DNA of 64,000 nucleotides from Epithemia pelagica. Lineage: Eukaryota; Protista; Bacillariophyta. The translations under genes and the position numbers were made by a program. Shown here one piece after another: positions 24,125-33,971 of the stretch. The notes under the pieces are model-generated. The model ran no database searches and was not told the origin of the DNA. It was given only the letters and a program-made list of their open reading frames with translations. The DNA is taken from the NCBI GenBank assembly GCA_946965045.2, contig OX337228.1, forward strand, positions 5,518,001 through 5,582,000, written 5' to 3'. Every line of letters begins with the position of its first letter. Position 1 is the first letter of the stretch.

Positions 24125-25334
24125 TTACTCCACCATGCAGATCATTTCGTTGAATCGGTCTACTTCCGTGGAAGATCCGATGCAAAGAGCAGTACGTTGG
24201 TCGACGGAGTTGATTTGAACATCCAAAATCGATCCACCAGTCACACCATCAGAAGTCTTGCCTCCTGCCTTTTCAACAAGAAGTCCGAAAGGAGCAGCTT
24301 CAAACGCCAGTCGGAGTTTGGCAGGGCTTCCTTCGGAGGTGGGGTTGGAGAAGACACCTTGTTCCTTTGTGAACTGTTGGTACACATCAGGGACAAGACC
24401 TCCAGAGTATCGGAGAGTGTAACGGTTCTCCATGAAGTGGTCAATGAGCTTCTTGTATCCAGGCAAGTCTTGGGCGGCACGCAAGTTGGCAGGGGCAAAG
24501 ATTTTGCAGTCAGGGCTGATGGAAATCTTGTGGCGAGAGCAGATCCAAGGTTCCCAGGTACCATCGGGAAGTTGGCAACCCTCAGGAGTGCAGCCGTAGC
24601 TGAATTCGTACGTTCCGTCGTCCAAGGCAACGAGAACAGTTGTACGAGGACCATACAAAGCAACCAAGGAGGTAACTTGGTCACGGCCAGTGGCTCCAAT
24701 CAAACCAGTGCTCTTGGGCCAAACACCAATCATGGTACCAACAGCCCAGTTATTGTCGACAATGGACGATCCATCCAAAGGATCCCAGCAGATAGTGAAC
24801 TCTCCGTCACCACCTTCGTCGACGTCACGGACAACAGGGTCTTCTTCGGAGGCTCCCTCGCGAATGACAGAAGACTTCTTCACCGAGTCCCAGATCAAGT
24901 TGTCGGCAATCACCTGTATATCGAAAAGAGTAAAATCACTATACAATGAGTCCATGGTCAACATTTCAGTTGTACTGTTCGTCCACTACAGACTTGTTCG
25001 CACTCACATCAACAGAAAGCTGGGCATCACCGAAATCGTTCATACTTCCTTCCACAGTGACAAGGGCTGTGCGAAGGGCCTCAGTGATTTCAGCGCACAC
25101 ATCAAGCATGTCCTTGATCACGGCGCGGACCTTGGGGTCGCTGCACTTTTGCTCAAGGACGGCGTCAAGGCTCTCATAGGAATCCTTTTTCTCCGTCTTT
25201 GTGTAGAAAGACGTGGACGAGGCACCAAATTCACCAAAAAGCTTGGTGGTGGAGGCCTGGCTTTTCAAGAAAGCAGGAGTGCTGAAAGCAGCAACTGCGT
25301 CGGCAAGGAGGAAGAGAGATGTGGCGACCTTCAT
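24125..25334 (-). CDS. SBP: Sedoheptulose-1,7-bisphosphatase-like enzyme with bipartite plastid presequence
   Basis: Exons 25334-25008 and 24913-24125 (intron 24914-25007), 371 aa. SBPase-type motifs: NDFGDAQLSVDVIAD, DPLDGSSIVDNN, TGRDQV..YGPRTT, YTLRYSGGLVPDV, AKLRLAFEAAP. Presequence MKVATSLFLLADAVAA-FSTPAFLKSQASTTKLF. Confidence 0.88.
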
Positions 25335-25740
25335 TGTTGGGGAGAAGAATGAACTGTGTGTCGAATCTGCCAGAGGTGATTCGCAAAAGTTTTCGTCTCG
25401 TGGACTCTGGGTAGCACGTCACACATTTGACATACGTATGCACGGGACTGCGTTGAGTAACCTTATTTTTCGGCCGACGTCGATCCGCTCACGATTATGG
25501 CACATCGTACGGACCATGACGACGATGTTAACACTCGGACCACAGACGACGATAATCCAAGGGAAAGGTTACAATCGTTTGCAAAAGCTCATACATCATC
25601 GATCGACTTAGAATGCTTCAACAACGAAAACAACTCAACGTATAGATAATCTGACCACCCCTAGCTACGGTAGCTAGTGATGATAAAAGTTGTAGATTAC
25701 GAATGCTATTTCACTGAAAAATACTAGGTAGGTAGGAATC

Positions 25741-27231
25741 TTAGTTGCCAGCAGCGGCATAAGCGTCAATAACTTCTTGGACATCGTTCTTCGATCCCAT
25801 GACGACAGGAATCCTTTGGTGAACAATCTTAGGCTTGATTTCCATGACACGTTCGGTACCAGTGGTGGACAAACCGCCAGCTTGTTCCATAATGAAGGAC
25901 ATGGGGGCACCTTCGTACAAAAGACGAAGCTTGCCATTGGGGTTCTTGGTATCACCGGGGTATCCAAAGACACCTCCGTACAACAAGGTACGGTGGACGT
26001 CTCCCACCATGGATCCAATGTAGCGACTGGAGAATTTCTTTCCGCTCTTTCCCGTTCCTTCACGCCACTTCATGACGGTATCACGCATTGGTGCGTCCCA
26101 CATTTCCAAGTTGGCTTCATTGAAGGAGTAGATGCCAGAATTTTCCGGGATTTCCACTCTTGGCTTTGAAAGAACAAACTCACCAATCGATTCATCCAAA
26201 GTGAAGATGTACACACCGTTTCCGAGGGTCAAGGCCAAGAATGTGGAGGAGGAATAGAGGCAGTAGGCGGCAGCGACAAGGTTTGTTCCGGGTTGAAGAG
26301 TGTTGGCAAGGCACTGGGCTTCTTGTTGAGTGCATTCATCGTCAATGCAATCAGGGTCAACTTCGCATCTTTCGTCGTGTTCATAGACGCCAATAATAGT
26401 TCCGGTGGGGATACCGGCATCGACATTGGACGATCCATCCAAGGCTATACAAAAGATGAAACAACCAAAACGTGTGAGGATGTTGCTCACATGCAGCTTA
26501 CCAAAGTTTTCAGCATGAAACGAGTCGTAAAAGCCAGATCGCTCTATTGGACAATGACAAAGAACAACTTACGCTGCAACACAAGAACACAATGAGTGAG
26601 ATGTCTGCTGGCAGCAAAGTTGGTCGAGAGAAGTGGAAACACCAGGAAATAAATAAATCAAACGGAAGCAGAGGAAACTTACATCGAATACTGCAACATA
26701 TTTGCCACTGTCGTCAATGATTACTTCTCGGTCGTCATCCTCCTCCAAAAGTGACACAGGCGCATCTTCTTCTTCGGAGGCCAGTACTCCCAAACGGCCA
26801 GTGAAACGAAGGGCACGCTTCAAGAGATCGTTCGTGATGACATCAAGCTTTTTCTGGTCTTCACCTTGGACATTGACCTCGCCTTGGTATCCAAGAGTCT
26901 CACTGGAGGGGAGCTGGGAACGCTTGACCAGGTTCGAGATGGCTTTGCAGGCCGTATCAATGGCTCCAAAGAGAGTTGTAAGCTCCTTGAGTTCAGGGTT
27001 GAGCATGGTGACTTCATTCATGAAGCGAGTCAATGTAACTCCAGTGGTGTCGCACACTTCGTCAAAGACGGGTGCCTTTGTTTTGGTTTGAATTCCAGAG
27101 GGTGGTGCTTCGACCGACGAAAACATGACACTGGATGTGCGAGCCGGTGTCTGGGCTCCTCCACCCACAACGAAAGCATCGGCAACCGTGGACGCAAGGG
27201 CGAATACTACGGCAACAGCACTAAACTTCAT
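25741..27231 (-). CDS. FBP: Plastid fructose-1,6-bisphosphatase, copy A (contains a 1-nt exon)
   Basis: Exons 27231-26683, 26573 (1 nt) and 26444-25741, 417 aa. Motifs: [47 protein letters not shown]. Signal cleavage at ADA-FVV. Confidence 0.93.
26573..26573 (-). other. Single-nucleotide exon (C) of FBPase copy A
   Basis: The minus strand reads TTGCAG|C|GTAAGT. The flanking introns are 26574-26682 and 26445-26572. The C is required to restore the frame of D-P-L-D-G. Confidence 0.8.
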
Positions 27232-27682
27232 GGTTTCGGTTTGTCTCACGAACACAAAAGGTTGGAAAAGAGACCTGATATAGTATGACGATGAAAGCAA
27301 TCGAATGAATACGGATGCAGGCGTTATTTTTTCTGACATGTTACGAGAATCGGTTCAAAAATTTAAATTCAGGGGGCGTGTTAGATCAATGACGTGTGTG
27401 CGAAAAGGCACGTTGGTCGGAACCAACATTCTTGCAAAAGAGGTGAAATTTTGTGAATCTGCGCCCCACCGTACGACGATACTCCGCTTTACTTACTGTT
27501 ACTGCATACATAGGTTAGTGGGGCAGAGCCTTAAATTTTCTTGCATGAGATGACACGACGACGGAGTCTGTCGCACGACAAAATCCGTCGTGCCACACAC
27601 CAAAGATACAATAGAGCAATTTGCATTCGCAAGTTTGTCTGGTCTATAAGTTGGAAAAAGGTGCAGTTGGAAACAAACAACC
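27232..27682. promoter_or_regulatory. Putative bidirectional promoter between the two FBPase genes
   Basis: 451 bp separate the divergent ATGs at 27231 (-) and 27683 (+). The interval contains a TGACGT motif at 27390. Confidence 0.55.
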
Positions 27683-29229
27683 ATGAAGATTGTGCAACTT
27701 CTCTCTCTTGTCGTCGCCCCAGTGGCTGGCTTTTCGCCGCTTACTGGACCTGCCCACCGTACTGCTTCGTCTTTGGGAATTGCCACCAACTCGGCGCCGG
27801 TGGAACCCAAGACGAAGGCCCCTGTCTTCGACGAAGTCTGTGAAACCACGGGCGTCACCCTGAAACGCTTCATGACCGAAGTCGCCATGCTCAACCCTGA
27901 AATCACAGAATTGACCACCCTCTTTGGTGCGATTGACACTGCCTGCAAGGCCATTGCCAAGTAAGTTCGTCCCTCCCCTGTCGGTTCTCGGTTGCCGGTT
28001 GCCGGTTGCCTTGTGCAGTTCATGTCAAAGTCACTCATTAACACAACCATTGCTTTCTTTTTGGAACAGCCTGGTCCGTCGGTCGCAACTTCCATCGAGT
28101 GAAACCCTTGGACTCGAAGGAGAAGTGAATATTCAAGGTGAAGACCAAAAGAAGTTGGACGTGATCACCAACGACATTTTGAAGAGAGCCCTTCGCTTCA
28201 CTGGACGATTGGGAGTGTTGGCCTCTGAGGAAGAGGACACCCCTGTCGATCTCATGGCCAACCAACAACCTTCTGTCATCATTGATGAGGGAGAGAAATA
28301 TGTCGCTGTCTTTGATGTAAGTCAGTCAAAAGCACGAATGACGTGCTGTCGGTTTGATCACTAACTGTCGTCCTACTTCACTGTTGTTTCTCGACTTCGA
28401 ATCTTTTGTGTTATTCCTACTTTGGTTTTCCCTGCACTTTTGGAAATAGCGTAAGTTCCCCAAGCAGCTGATTTCTATGAATCGTGGATCGTGTACTCAC
28501 TAAATTTTTCTGGACGTTTGTCAAACAGCCTTGGACGGATCTTCGAACGTTGACGCTGGTATTCCCACTGGTACCATTGTTGGAATCTATGAACATGACG
28601 AAGAATGTGCAGTTGACCCCGACTGTGTTGGAGACGAATGCACCGAACAAGAAGCACAGTGCCTTGCCAACACTCTTCAACCTGGAACCAACTTGGTTGC
28701 TGCCGCCTACTGCCTCTATTCCTCTTCCACCTTCCTCGTCCTCACTCTTGGAGCTGGAACATATGGATTCACTTTGGACGACAACCTTGGAGAGTTTGTC
28801 TTGAGTCACCCCAATATTCAGATCCCAGAGACTTCCTCCATCATGTCTTTCAACGAGGCCAATACTGGAAACTGGGACGAACCCCTCCAAAAGGTTGTCA
28901 GTAACTGGAAGGCAGGAACTGGCGCCAGTGGCAAGAAATTCTCCAGCAGATACATTGGCTCCATGGTTGGAGATGTTCACCGTACCTTGTTGTACGGTGG
29001 TGTGTTTGGATACCCTGCCGATACCAAGAACACGAATGGAAAGCTTCGTCTCTTGTACGAGGGTGCACCCATGTCGTACATTGTGGAACAAGCAGGGGGA
29101 CTGTCAACGACTGGAACAAAGAGAGTAATGGAAATCTCCCCTGAAACCGTCCACCAACGTGTTCCCATTGTTATGGGCTCCAAGAACGATATTCAAGAAG
29201 TTATTGATTCTTACGCCGCCAGCAACTAG
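27683..29229 (+). CDS. FBP: Plastid fructose-1,6-bisphosphatase, copy B (contains a 1-nt exon)
   Basis: Exons 27683-27960, 28070-28316, 28450 (1 nt) and 28529-29229, 408 aa. It has the same catalytic motifs as copy A. Signal cleavage at VAG-FSP. Confidence 0.93.
28450..28450 (+). other. Single-nucleotide exon (C) of FBPase copy B
   Basis: The sequence reads AAATAG|C|GTAAGT. The flanking introns are 28317-28449 and 28451-28528. The C is required to restore the frame of D-P-L-D-G. Confidence 0.8.
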
Positions 29230-29534
29230 ATATAAAAAAGTGATGATAGTATAAGTGGATAGTATACACGAAATCTAGAGCAAATCTACTTATCTCCAGG
29301 GTCGTGAGTGTTTTTTATTTGTCTAACGTTCAAACATATTCAACATGTGACTAATGATCGGCATTTATGGGAGGTTGGTTGATGAACAAAAAGAAGCTCG
29401 GAGTGATTTGAAAAAGTCTGCTGAACCCAACCCAATCTTTTGTGATGTGGTGAGATATAAGAGAGTCAATCATACAAGCGATGGAGTCTAACCCGACGCG
29501 AAATTGTCGCGTTGAAAGAAATGGTACCGCTTTC

Positions 29535-30155
29535 TCAGACGAGTACCGTTTCCTTGACTGCTGGTTCGCTGCTTGGAGTGTGTTTGTCCGAGTTTGAGCG
29601 TCCTTTTGACCTGGACCGTTTGGCATCATGGCGTGAGCGCGATCGACTGCGTCTTGAAGACTTGGATCTGCTGCTTCTCCTGCTCTTGTTGTCTTCGTCA
29701 TCCTTCATCAAATCGTAATCTCCCTTGCGTGAACGAGATCGACTTCGACTTCGTTTGACGGACCCTGACCGGCCCTTACTCTCTGACCTCTTCTTCTCTT
29801 TTTTGTTGGAAGAAGATGAGTCAGAAGACATCCTTCGCATTATAGCACGAAACATTAAGATGGATAGTCCAAGTGCGACAATTATTGAAACAATTTTGAT
29901 GGTATTCTTGAAGATTGTGGACTCTGTTGCAAGTCCACCACCACCTCCTCCTCCTCCACCACCATCGCCGCCTCCACCACTTCCTCCGTAGAAGCTTTCG
30001 TACGCTCCATCATTGAAATCTCGCATGGCCTCGTCATCGTTAAACCAACCAGCTCGTTGTCGCCAATATTCGACATCTTCGATCCGCCGTAATTGGTTTG
30101 TGAATCTCGCGCCTTCCTGCTCTGTCTCCGAGGACTGCCGAAGATACCGTGTCAT
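29535..30155 (-). CDS. Single-pass membrane protein with Gly-rich linker and RS-dipeptide-rich tail
   Basis: 206-aa ORF with TM segment IVSIIVALGLSILMF, poly-Gly, and RSRSRSRS repeats. Confidence 0.75.
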   Translation of the reverse strand: MTRYLRQSSETEQEGARFTNQLRRIEDVEYWRQRAGWFNDDEAMRDFNDGAYESFYGGSGGGGDGGGGGGGGGGLATESTIFKNTIKIVSIIVALGLSILMFRAIMRRMSSDSSSSNKKEKKRSESKGRSGSVKRSRSRSRSRKGDYDLMKDDEDNKSRRSSRSKSSRRSRSRSRHDAKRSRSKGRSNSDKHTPSSEPAVKETVLV

Positions 30156-31051
30156 TGCTCAATATTATTTGCTCACGCTTAGTGTCGAACCGTTTCGACT
30201 TTCACGGTGACGTTGGTGCCCTAGTAAGAAAAAGTGGTAATGCGATGATGGAATAAATGGGCGGTTTGTTGCTTGGACGTGGTCAATTCCTCAAATTTAA
30301 TGACAAAGAAGGACTTGACGAAATGGATATCTTCGATCCTGGAACAACAGACCCCGGAAGCTCCAGCACATATAGAATGAGGTGTCGTTCAACAGTCTCA
30401 ACCTCTTCTTCCTCTTCCCTTCCAATAGAGTTCAGGAAAAGTCAGACGAGACCACCTCGTGGATTCTTGGTCCTGTGTGGTAGACTACCAAAATTGTTCT
30501 TGGCCCCCTCGCAACTCGCAACGTTGACTGTGTTGGCTCTGGCGGCGCCAGCGAGTTGGCGATTGTCGACTGGCGCGGCGTATAAACACTTGCATTACAC
30601 GAAATCTACTCCAAATTCCATGAGAACGAAGCAAATTCTCTGTATATAGTACAATAGTTAGGGAGACATTTTGATTATATCTCCTCTAAGCCGCAGTATT
30701 TTGGGACATTTTGCGCTTATGCCATGGATGGTTTACTTACAACGACACGCTTCCCTCCTCACATCCCACACGACACACGACACAACGGACGGGCAGCGTG
30801 CGCGACTCTCTAAAATACAATGACCTGACAAACGCATGAGATGCGCGAACAACAAGACCAAACGCAAGCGTAAGTAGAGGAGCTTCCGATTACACTCCTT
30901 ATTCGATAATCGTACACGTGCCAACAAACGAAGACGCAGTCTGTCTGTCATCTCATGGGCGTGATTGATTCATTCCTGTTAGTGACGCATTTCGGGGTCC
31001 AGTTTTCCTGAACACTTCCAAATTTTCAGTTCGTGTCTGGAAGTCTCGACC

Positions 31052-32404
31052 ATGATGTTGAAATCGCCTTCAGCCTCATGTTTGCTCGTCAGTTGCAGTC
31101 TTTGTATCACAGTGATACACATACCTTTTACCCATGGATTTTCGGTGATCCAAGAAACACGAACGCCGTTGACGCGTTTGGCTTCATCCATCGGTGGAGA
31201 CGGTGGAGGTCCTGCATCCAACGATGATGGCAGCGGAAGCAACTGGGACGATTTCTTTCGAGGAGAGGAATCTGAAAGTATGCTTCGTGCTAGAGAATAT
31301 TTTAGCGAAAATTCTCTCCCAATCAACTTTGATGCAAGCACGAAAGAGGATGATACAGGTGAAACAAATACGGATTCGAATGAATTGGATCGAGCAAACG
31401 AACAAACAAAGCCTCAGGGTAACAACTCACCTTTTACGGATGACCAAGATTCTTTTGCGCTCGTACGATCTGGGACCGATGATAATTCGTTTGGAAGCTT
31501 CGCGCAAGATGAAGACGTTCTGGCATCCAATCCATACATGGCTGCTGTATCAAAGGTCTCGCCCTCGGATCTGATTTCGAAATTCACCAGCACCGCCCAC
31601 CCTCGTGTCCAAAATGCGGTTCGAAGTACAGTGTTGTCATTGATTGGGGGTTTACCGAAAATGGCATTTGAAACAACAACAATCACGACAGGTCAAAGAC
31701 TGGCTTCTCTCATGTTTCAGTTGCAGATGACAGGATATATGTTCAAGAATGCCGAGTATAGGCTTTCGCTGCAACAGTCCATTGGTTCGGATAGCATTCT
31801 CGATGGAAACCCTCTATTGCTTGAAGGAAGTGCAGGGACGTCATCGGACAACAAACCTTCTGTAGACTCCAAAGTTAAGGGCAAGTTAAGGGTCAAATAC
31901 GGCACGAAAAAAGATGGGGAACTGGCGGATAAGGAAGCTTCTTCCAGTTCGATGGAGGTAGAAGTCGATGCAGCTGCTTATATGTCAGAACTGCGATCCG
32001 AGGTAATGCAGCTCCGCGATGAGCTCATGATCACACGGAAAGAGAAGGAAGATGCATTACGGAAAGATTTACTGGTCTACATTCGCACATTACCCGAACA
32101 AGAACTTAGAAGCTTGACGAATACAATATCACAAGATGTCTTGGTGTCCATGAAAGGCTTGGTGAATGCGGTAATGTCGGGTATTGGTGATGGACAAATT
32201 GGCCCAAACACAACAACGGAAATGTCAGCGGAAGCAATGGCTCAGCTTTGCATGTGGCAACTCTGTATAGGATACAACCTGCGAACCCTGGAGGTTAGAG
32301 AAGAAATGAAGAAATCTCTGAGTGGAAACACCTCTGCATCAGGTACCATTTCCGGCATCAAACCTCCAAACGAAAGGGGAGATTCCCCCGGTGCATTTGA
32401 GTAG
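31052..32404 (+). CDS. Plastid-targeted DUF760-family protein (two repeats)
   Basis: Motifs: LASLMFQLQMTGYMFKNAEYRLSL and AQLCMWQLCIGYNLRTLEVRE. Signal cleavage at THG-FSV. Confidence 0.85.
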   Translation: MMLKSPSASCLLVSCSLCITVIHIPFTHGFSVIQETRTPLTRLASSIGGDGGGPASNDDGSGSNWDDFFRGEESESMLRAREYFSENSLPINFDASTKEDDTGETNTDSNELDRANEQTKPQGNNSPFTDDQDSFALVRSGTDDNSFGSFAQDEDVLASNPYMAAVSKVSPSDLISKFTSTAHPRVQNAVRSTVLSLIGGLPKMAFETTTITTGQRLASLMFQLQMTGYMFKNAEYRLSLQQSIGSDSILDGNPLLLEGSAGTSSDNKPSVDSKVKGKLRVKYGTKKDGELADKEASSSSMEVEVDAAAYMSELRSEVMQLRDELMITRKEKEDALRKDLLVYIRTLPEQELRSLTNTISQDVLVSMKGLVNAVMSGIGDGQIGPNTTTEMSAEAMAQLCMWQLCIGYNLRTLEVREEMKKSLSGNTSASGTISGIKPPNERGDSPGAFE

Positions 32405-32665
32405 AATCAAATGACTGTAGTACATGGTGACGATGGTTCGTGAATACCCCAATCCAACATGAATTGCGCTCTTGTGATGAGTATCAGAAAATCCTTAGTT
32501 AAAAATACACTGGAACAGGACGCTTCGAATGGCTGTGGTGTGGGTTGACGTTTGAGTCTGGGAGCTGGTGAAGAGCGGAGACGCCGTCGAACCTGATATA
32601 AGATCCCTAAGATGTAGTAAGAGCGCAGATAGTGGAGAGTTCTTTGCATTTTAGATTTAAAGGTT

Positions 32666-33971
32666 TTATTCCTTCACTTCTTCATACGCCCATTTGAGCC
32701 ATGGCATCAGGGTTTCCACGTCGGCCTTTTCGACTGTCGAGCCGCACCAGATTCTAATCGACGGAGGGGCATCACGATAGCCTCCAATATCGTAGGCGAC
32801 GCCTTCGTTTTCCAAAAGCTTGACAAATGTCTTGATCTGGTCTGCAGATAAATCCAAGGTGAGGCATACCGATGTGGAAGATCGAGTGGCTGGGTCTTTC
32901 GCGAGAAAATCAATCCAGTCGTTTTCCTTGACAAAGTCTTCTACAACAGAAAGGTTGTCTAAGCTCAACTGCTTCAATGCTGATACACCACCAATTGAGT
33001 CAGCCCATTGCAAAGCATCGATGTAGTCTTCAACTGCCAAGAGACTCGGCGTATTGATCGTTGCACCCTTGAAAATGCCTGCTTCAAGCTTTCCTTTCTT
33101 TGTCAAACGAAAGACTTTGGGCAAAGGGCGATTCTCGGGTGTGTAAGATTCCAAACGCTCGACTGCCTTGGGAGAAAGAATCAAAATCCCATGACCACCT
33201 TCTCCCCCAAGAACTTTTTGCCAAGAGTAGGTTGTGACGTCCAACTTCGACCAAGGCATGTCCATGGCAAAGCAAGCAGACGTTGCATCACAGAGCGTAA
33301 GTCCTGTGCGAGAATCACTGATGAACTCACAACCATCCGGGACACGGACGCCAGACGTGGTTCCATTAAAGGTAAAGCAAATATCGTGTTCAGGGTTCGT
33401 CTTGCCCAAGTCTGGGAGCTCGCCGTAATCTGCAGTATACTCATTGACTTCAACAGTATCGCGAAGCTTTAAATGAGAAATAGCATCGGCGAACCAGCCT
33501 TTTCCGAAGGATTCCCAGTGGCAAACATCGACATTTCGCTCCCCAAGCATATTCCACATGGCCATCTCGTACGCTCCCGTGTCTGATCCAGGTACAATTC
33601 CCACTTGATAATCTTCGGGAATTTGCAGAATTCGCTTTGTTTCTGAAATCGCCAAGCCTAAACGTTCTTTTCCAATCTTGCTACGGTGCGAGCGCCCTGC
33701 TGTCCGACTGTCAAGCTTAGCAACGTCATATCCAGGGCGCTTTTTGCAGGGACCCGACGAGAATTCTGGATTCAATGGCTGTTTTGGCACATCAAAGTCA
33801 CTTGTAAGAAACCCATCAAACAATACCCTCAAGTTCAGCGGGGGCACGTACCTTCACTGCAGGAGTGGCGATGCTCATCATACGAAGAGCGGAAAAGCCT
33901 GCCACATTTCCTGGTAGTATTTTCCTTGGAGCAAAAGAAAGCATTCTGGCCGCTGATGGAAGTCGCATCAT
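32666..33971 (-). CDS. serC: Phosphoserine aminotransferase (Methanosarcina/alphaproteobacterial SerC type) with mitochondrial presequence
   Basis: Exons 33971-33852 and 33778-32666 (intron 33779-33851). Motifs: [51 protein letters not shown]. Presequence [13 protein letters not shown]. Confidence 0.93.

Follow-up and report, generated by a model that had tools for sequence, protein, structure and literature searches.

The 64,000-nucleotide stretch of Epithemia pelagica DNA analyzed here (assembly GCA_946965045.2, contig OX337228.1, positions 5,518,001 to 5,582,000; hereafter the window) carries two class I fructose-1,6-bisphosphatase (FBPase) genes, which are divergently transcribed and lie 451 nucleotides (nt) apart. 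Both paralogs are of the plastid type, with the minus-strand copy at 25741-27231 and the plus-strand copy at 27683-29229, and the minus copy is followed downstream by an SBPase-like gene. The Pfam families FBPase (PF00316) and FBPase_C (PF18913) were matched in the exon pieces of both copies, above the curated cut-offs. In each gene, the DPLDG motif is interrupted at the genomic level by a gap that very probably harbors an exon of a single base, a C at 26573 (minus strand) and at 28450 (plus strand).

A One-Base Frame Deficit at the DPLDG Motif

In the minus copy, exon 1 (26683-27231) reads from the ATG at 27231 over 183 codons to ...GTA TTC GAT, as judged from the open reading frame (ORF) and its translation, and matches the N-terminal domain of Pfam FBPase (E 3e-17); TTCGAT ends at 26683, directly ahead of GTAAGT. 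The last exon (25741-26444) begins with CCTTGGATGG at 26444, after TATAG; its translation starts from CC TTG GAT GGA, runs to the stop codon and matches both Pfam families. A gap of 238 nt (26445-26682) separates the two. The layout is the same in the plus copy, where exon 2 (28070-28316), matched by Pfam FBPase, ends in ...GTC TTT GAT, with TTTGAT ending at 28316 and GTAAGT following, while the last exon (28529-29229) begins with CCTTGGACGG at 28529, after AACAG, is translated from CC TTG GAC GGA to the stop codon, and again matches both families; here the gap (28317-28528) measures 212 nt. A preliminary description of this DNA had claimed that both paralogs are one base short at Asp-Pro-Leu-Asp-Gly, and this deficit holds across the two gaps. 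The motif itself is hardly variable, since FDPLDG occurs in 117 of 120 homologous proteins among the matches listed in our first search, and the role of DPLDGSSN in metal binding is established (Asp118 and Asp121 in the pig kidney enzyme).

The same description had pointed to an AG-C-GTAAGT within each gap, and we find this site once in each: TTGCAG-C-GTAAGT in the minus copy and AAATAG-C-GTAAGT in the plus copy. In the minus copy, it delimits sub-intron A (26574-26682, 109 nt, GTAAGT...TTGCAG), the one-base exon at 26573 (coding-strand C, plus-strand G) and sub-intron B (26445-26572, 128 nt, GTAAGT...GTATAG). In the plus copy, the corresponding elements are sub-intron A (28317-28449, 133 nt, GTAAGT...AAATAG), the C at 28450 and sub-intron B (28451-28528, 78 nt, GTAAGT...AAACAG). 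In both cases, the C would be the first base of the proline codon of DPLDG. Counting it in yields, as had been stated, open frames of 417 amino acids (minus) and 408 amino acids (plus) with FDPLDGSSN, and these frames exist only when it is counted in; the 408-amino-acid model further requires exon 1 at 27683-27960 and exon 2 at 28070-28316. No competing site stands out, the AG-C-GTAAGT being the only AG-C-G followed by T or C in the minus gap and the only AG-N-G followed by T or C in the plus gap. According to 200,000 shuffles of each gap, the chance of meeting AGCGTAAGT is about 2-4 in 10,000 per gap. In the whole 64-kb window, there are only 19 GTAAGT, both strands counted, while AGCGTAAGT occurs at four sites, against 0.16 expected. 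The two occurrences outside the FBPase gaps were rejected as one-base exons: the first, at 33294-33302 (plus strand), is antisense within a 393-amino-acid minus-strand ORF (32666-33847), and the second, at 30867-30875 (plus strand), lies about 185 nt upstream of a DUF760 ORF (31052-32404) and may serve as the donor for a short first exon.

Two further features of the gaps reported in the preliminary description stand up to examination. Their lengths are about twice that of a local intron, the ordinary intron of the plus copy, which is backed by RNA, being 109 nt long. Moreover, the intron sequences of the two copies are not alignable, similarity between them being undetectable.

The Single C in Transcripts and Genomic DNA

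Several public sequencing runs were found to contain these genes: X7 to X9 are DNA-like and come from the same organism, X10 is from the same organism and contains exonic words only, and X1 to X6 are marine metatranscriptomes. Contigs of X10, X1, X2 and X7 were compared with positions 25700-29250 of the window. All RNA evidence below consists of assembled Logan contigs rather than raw reads, and such contigs drop rare forms. For the minus copy, a cDNA contig of X10 (853 nt, depth 2079) covers 27099-26683, a single letter (G on the plus strand, C in the message) and 26444-26010, with no mismatch, both sub-introns being missing. For the plus copy, another X10 contig (1183 nt, depth 549) covers 27656-27960, 28070-28316, a single C and 28529-29135, again devoid of both sub-introns. 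Finally, a 246-nt contig of X1, from a different study and sample, covers 28240-28316, a single C and 28529-28696. The junction GAT-C-CCTTGGA, for which the preliminary description had suggested looking in cDNA, is therefore present in both paralogs in X10 and, for the plus copy, once more in X1; the contrary result considered there, cDNA without the extra C, does not correspond to the X10 contigs, which have the C in both copies. The cDNA contigs differ from the flanking exons of their own paralog by 0 and 1 letters, whereas the two paralogs are only 75% identical in DNA, which rules out a transcript from another copy. In both genes, the mature mRNA contains precisely one additional C, at a junction where genomic DNA does not have it. 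No contig with one sub-intron kept was found, the depth in the intron bins being 0, which says little given that assembled contigs lose rare forms.

On the genomic side, the X7 DNA contigs follow the window through both gaps, with letters neither inserted nor missing. A further assembly or haplotype from this species (ENA ERZ21939226, ctg1228l; L091) is 99.6% identical to positions 24540-33230 over 8.7 kb. It differs there by 22 single-nucleotide polymorphisms (SNPs), with 9 nt inserted after 27614 and 1 nt deleted at 29233, while both gaps and their flanks are identical to those of the window. The variants at 27524, 28039 and 28848 are common to L091 and to X7, and the T>G at 28848 is seen in RNA too. 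A third C at the acceptors, which the preliminary description had named as a possible flaw, is absent from X7 and L091, both of which have CC at the two acceptors and no indels; an assembly error, against which it had argued, is excluded by these two sources.

Conservation in a Relative and Splicing Signals of the Sub-Introns

A search for AG-N-GT in orthologs, also suggested in the preliminary description, retrieved AG-C-GTAAGT in both orthologs of one relative, known from the DNA contigs of run SRR25945676, whose proteins are 91-92% identical to the FBPases of the window. Its minus-type gene (L001) reads ...TTCGAC-gtaagt...ctccag-C-gtaagt...gttcag-CTTTGGACGG, with the one-base exon at position 342, and its plus-type gene (L085) reads ...TTCGAC-gtaagt...attgcag-C-gtaagt...aattag-CTTTGGATGG, with the one-base exon at position 1290. 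The proline codon is C+CT in the relative against C+CC in the window. Third-codon-position identity between the relative and the window is only about 0.3-0.7, synonymous sites being near saturation, and the introns are barely alignable except for splice-site blocks such as CAG-C-GTAAGTT. The one-base site has therefore persisted in four gene copies over a long divergence.

Considering two paralogs in two species, eight sub-introns are available, with lengths of 73-133 nt; all eight start with GTAAGT and end with YAG, and in seven of them a branch-like CTNAC precedes the 3' end by 27-37 nt. In the window, minus sub-intron A has CTCAC 27 nt before its 3' end and ends in CAG, minus sub-intron B has CTCAC at -34 and ends in TAG, and plus sub-intron B has CTCAC at -33 and ends in CAG. 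In plus sub-intron A, the last 60 nt are free of AG save the terminal one, and the best branch candidate is a CACTAAC about 86 nt upstream, followed by an AG-free, pyrimidine-rich stretch. Given these signals of its own and its ordinary size, each half of a gap looks like a self-sufficient intron.

Source of the C and Alternative Explanations

We propose that each gap would consist of a pair of spliceosomal introns of ordinary, short length (109 + 128 nt for the minus gene, 133 + 78 nt for the plus gene) on either side of a single-C exon, which may be constitutively included in both FBPase messages. The sub-introns would be recognized by intron definition, each GTAAGT 5' site being expected to pair fully with U1, and would be removed stepwise, one and then the other. 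At a 5' site, U1 pairs from position -3 to position +6, while U2AF35 contacts the AG of the 3' site. A single base separates the 3' site of the first sub-intron from the 5' site of the second, and the two could hardly both be occupied, hence the stepwise removal. Either order should be workable, because all recognizable signals lie within the introns. In its form, the site would be a recursive splice site (AG-GTAAGT) that retains one base.

Three considerations weigh against this reading or its details. First, the C is assigned to 26573 and 28450 through position and conservation rather than by direct observation; this assignment is nonetheless very well supported by the sequences. Second, plus sub-intron A has no YTNAY within 60 nt of its 3' end. 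Third, since contigs drop rare forms, a skipped isoform is possible.

At face value, one could equally imagine that the 212- or 238-nt gap is removed as a single intron and that the C is added by RNA editing or insertion, or is another C of the gap taken up by a non-canonical splice. The cDNA contigs do show one C between the exons without revealing its source, and no intermediates were seen among them. This scenario leaves unexplained, however, why AG-C-GTAAGT is found in all four gaps (two paralogs, two species), at a chance of about 3 in 10,000 per gap, and why each gap is about twice as long as a normal local intron. Furthermore, the bases after GAT and before CC are both G, so that a shift of the outer splice sites, or slippage there, cannot supply a C, and we know of no single-base insertion editing in diatom nuclear mRNAs. 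We thus regard it as improbable.

A second alternative takes the one-base exon for granted but makes it a switch, its skipping leading to a frameshifted, prematurely terminated message that would tune FBPase output. Without the C, the plus-copy frame indeed shifts and meets a stop at about 28804, and in plants the one-base exon of VPS55 is present in some isoforms and absent from others (PMC8831610). In contrast, only the C-containing form was assembled here, at depths of 549 and 2079, and no contig of a skipped form was found, although contigs drop rare variants; such regulation is rated marginally less probable still than the single intron. Finally, an artefact, either an assembly lacking a C at both acceptors or cDNA derived from other, intron-free FBPase copies, would be conceivable given that long-read assemblies are prone to homopolymer errors and that FBPase is a multigene family, but, as far as contigs can show, it can be practically dismissed in view of the absence of indels from both gaps in X7, of the identity of these gaps in L091 despite 22 SNPs in 8.7 kb, of the same one-base deficit in both genes of a different species, and of cDNA contigs that match their own paralog with 0 and 1 other letters when the paralogs share 75%. 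A single-C exon flanked by two short introns therefore is the explanation retained below.

Gene Models and Neighboring Features

The plus copy has, in addition to the split gap, an ordinary first intron (27961-28069, 109 nt, GT...AG) between exon 1 (27683-27960), defined by its ORF, and exon 2; the joint from 27960 to 28070 is found in the X10 cDNA contig, while exon 2 is covered by contigs of both X10 and X1. This X10 contig begins at 27656, right after Illumina adapter letters, and position 27656 is probably the 5' end of the plus-copy mRNA, 27 nt ahead of the ATG. The 451-nt region between the two genes is a divergent promoter region common to both. As judged by eye, the N-termini of the two copies (MKFSAVAVVFALASTVADAF for one of them) look like signal peptides ending ahead of a Phe, as would be expected of a diatom bipartite plastid presequence. 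In the public ORF calls for the species, both FBPase genes are cut into pieces, in line with the earlier expectation that gene predictors would probably mis-model them.

The SBPase-like gene (24125-25334, minus strand) seemingly has one intron of roughly 96 nt, with the donor GAT-GTGAGT. Its CWDPLDGSS is uninterrupted, which indicates that the one-base exon is not common to this more distant family member.

Distribution and Origin of the One-Base Exon

In Fistulifera solaris (L084), the synteny of the three genes (FBPase, FBPase and SBPase-like) is kept with respect to the window, and none of the three genes of the cluster has its motif interrupted; the 411-amino-acid gene of this species has one intron, of 78 nt, at codon 211. 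An uninterrupted motif is likewise seen in DNA from a Bacillariaceae genome, in related contigs and in L003. When the C-terminal exon was used as a query against JGI metagenome and metatranscriptome contigs, no further carrier of a one-base exon was found, the motif being uninterrupted in 80 of 80 loci; most of these are transcript-sized and uninformative on introns, and several are multi-kb genomic contigs.

A few sequences were examined as candidate carriers and rejected. The FNALDG of protein P0025 is not a model forced over a one-base exon, since the corresponding contig (L002) reads AAT GCC CTT GAT without interruption. The ORFs P0176, P0194 and P0162 (Bacillariaceae genome and metagenomes), which start at LDGSSN, are explained by an intron further upstream, GAT CCT TTG GAT being uninterrupted in L086 and L090. 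In P0055 (L003), the intron lies after DAGIPT and not between the D and the P of the motif. As for L002 itself (JGI 3300061568, Ga0589631_0116434, positions 960-980), it encodes a full-length diatom FBPase with FNALDG instead of the otherwise invariant FDPLDG, which is either a sequence error or a variant without the first metal-binding Asp.

In a tree computed from the C-terminal region, the two window copies fall in separate clades, each with a support of 100/98. Each clade includes an F. solaris gene, with sequences of Odontella and Pseudo-nitzschia also present in the plus-type one. This membership implies that the FBPase duplication is far older than the lineage with the one-base exon, the paralogs having diverged before the split between pennate and centric diatoms. 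Three origins are possible for an exon found in both: an old gene conversion between the neighboring genes, an ancient origin followed by many losses, or two parallel gains. We consider it unlikely that the intron-C-intron arrangement arose separately at the same position in both paralogs, which would point to site-directed intron creation; an old gene conversion, or an ancient origin with many losses, are the more ordinary alternatives.

A recent conversion between the window paralogs was rejected, third-position identity near the junction (0.33-0.47) being no higher than elsewhere, although synonymous sites are saturated. In F. solaris, DNA identity within the divergent FBPase pair (L084:5329-8314; GCA_002217885.1, BDSP01000016.1) reaches 99-100% along about 50 codons (~100-150 in the alignment), against 60-80% elsewhere. 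This stretch is a gene-conversion tract between the same pair of genes, and such conversion thus occurs. An introner or a tandem duplication was also rejected as the source of the introns, because none of the four sub-introns resembles another or any other part of the window.

Comparison with Known One-Base Exons

One-base exons are on record for APC11 in plants (PMC4674806), for APC11 and VPS55 across land plants (PMC8831610) and for CYP621A in Fusarium (Nelson & Syed 2026, PMC12940212). The preliminary description had cited only APC11 as a precedent, which has to be amended given the reports on VPS55 and CYP621A. Its statement that no such exon is known to have been described in diatoms agrees with our search of the available literature, which gave no paper linking diatoms and microexons.

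For the exon of Arabidopsis APC11, a sequential, intron-defined removal of the flanking introns has been proposed (Guo & Liu 2015, PMC4674806), and the exon has been validated by mutagenesis, A>T and A>G substitutions being carried into the cDNA (PMC4674806; Yu et al. 2022, PMC8831610). The resemblance to the diatom case is close: a single base between AG and GT inside one annotated intron, essential to the frame, missing from annotations, conserved among relatives and uninterrupted at the same site in other lineages, with a sequential intron-defined removal proposed in both. The differences are that the base is an A in the gene of a ubiquitin ligase subunit, against a C in FBPase; that the APC11 gap is 422 nt long and asymmetric (base at position 333), whereas the diatom sub-introns are 73-133 nt long; that the former was validated by mutagenesis, while the latter is known from cDNA contigs and sequence; and that, in the diatom, two anciently diverged paralogs carry the exon at the same codon.

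VPS55 also has a conserved donor, GTRAGT, right after its one-base exon, to be compared with the GTAAGT of 4/4 diatom sites (PMC8831610). In early land plants, however, isoforms with and without the exon exist and one paralog clade carries it, whereas both clades do so in the diatom, where the included form only is seen. The CYP621A exon shares with the FBPase exon a location inside a codon of a conserved motif (the Gly of PKG there, the Pro of DPLDG here), its discovery through a frame deficit, its conservation in orthologs and its support by public RNA-seq (PMC12940212), but it provides the middle base of the codon in a single gene, a fungal P450, instead of the first base in two paralogs.

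Finally, the zero-nucleotide ratchet points known from Drosophila and from vertebrates (PMC4674806, its references 26-29) have in common with the diatom site a 3' site abutting a 5' site, (Y)nAG-GTAAGT, and a stepwise removal. Yet a ratchet point contributes no base to the mRNA and splits a very long intron into segments, while the diatom site keeps one base between ordinary short sub-introns. Because this base is retained in the mRNA, the definition of a zero-nucleotide recursive splice site does not apply; the diatom site functions in the manner of a ratchet point without being one.

Significance

A one-base exon is the lower limit of exon size and a very rare structure, and only three gene families with such exons are on record in the literature we surveyed; diatom FBPase is the fourth such family and brings in the stramenopiles (diatoms) as a fourth major lineage. 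The catalytic motif that contains the exon binds metal in an enzyme of the Calvin cycle. An annotation missing the exon yields two truncated or frameshifted plastid-type FBPases, and the case argues for a microexon-aware annotation of diatom genomes. The occurrence of the exon in two old paralogs and its absence from other diatoms, taken together with the conversion tract of F. solaris, provide a concrete case in which the spread of intron positions between paralogs can be studied. More generally, the FBPase genes lend support to the idea that one-base exons can in general be processed by spliceosomes that operate through intron definition.

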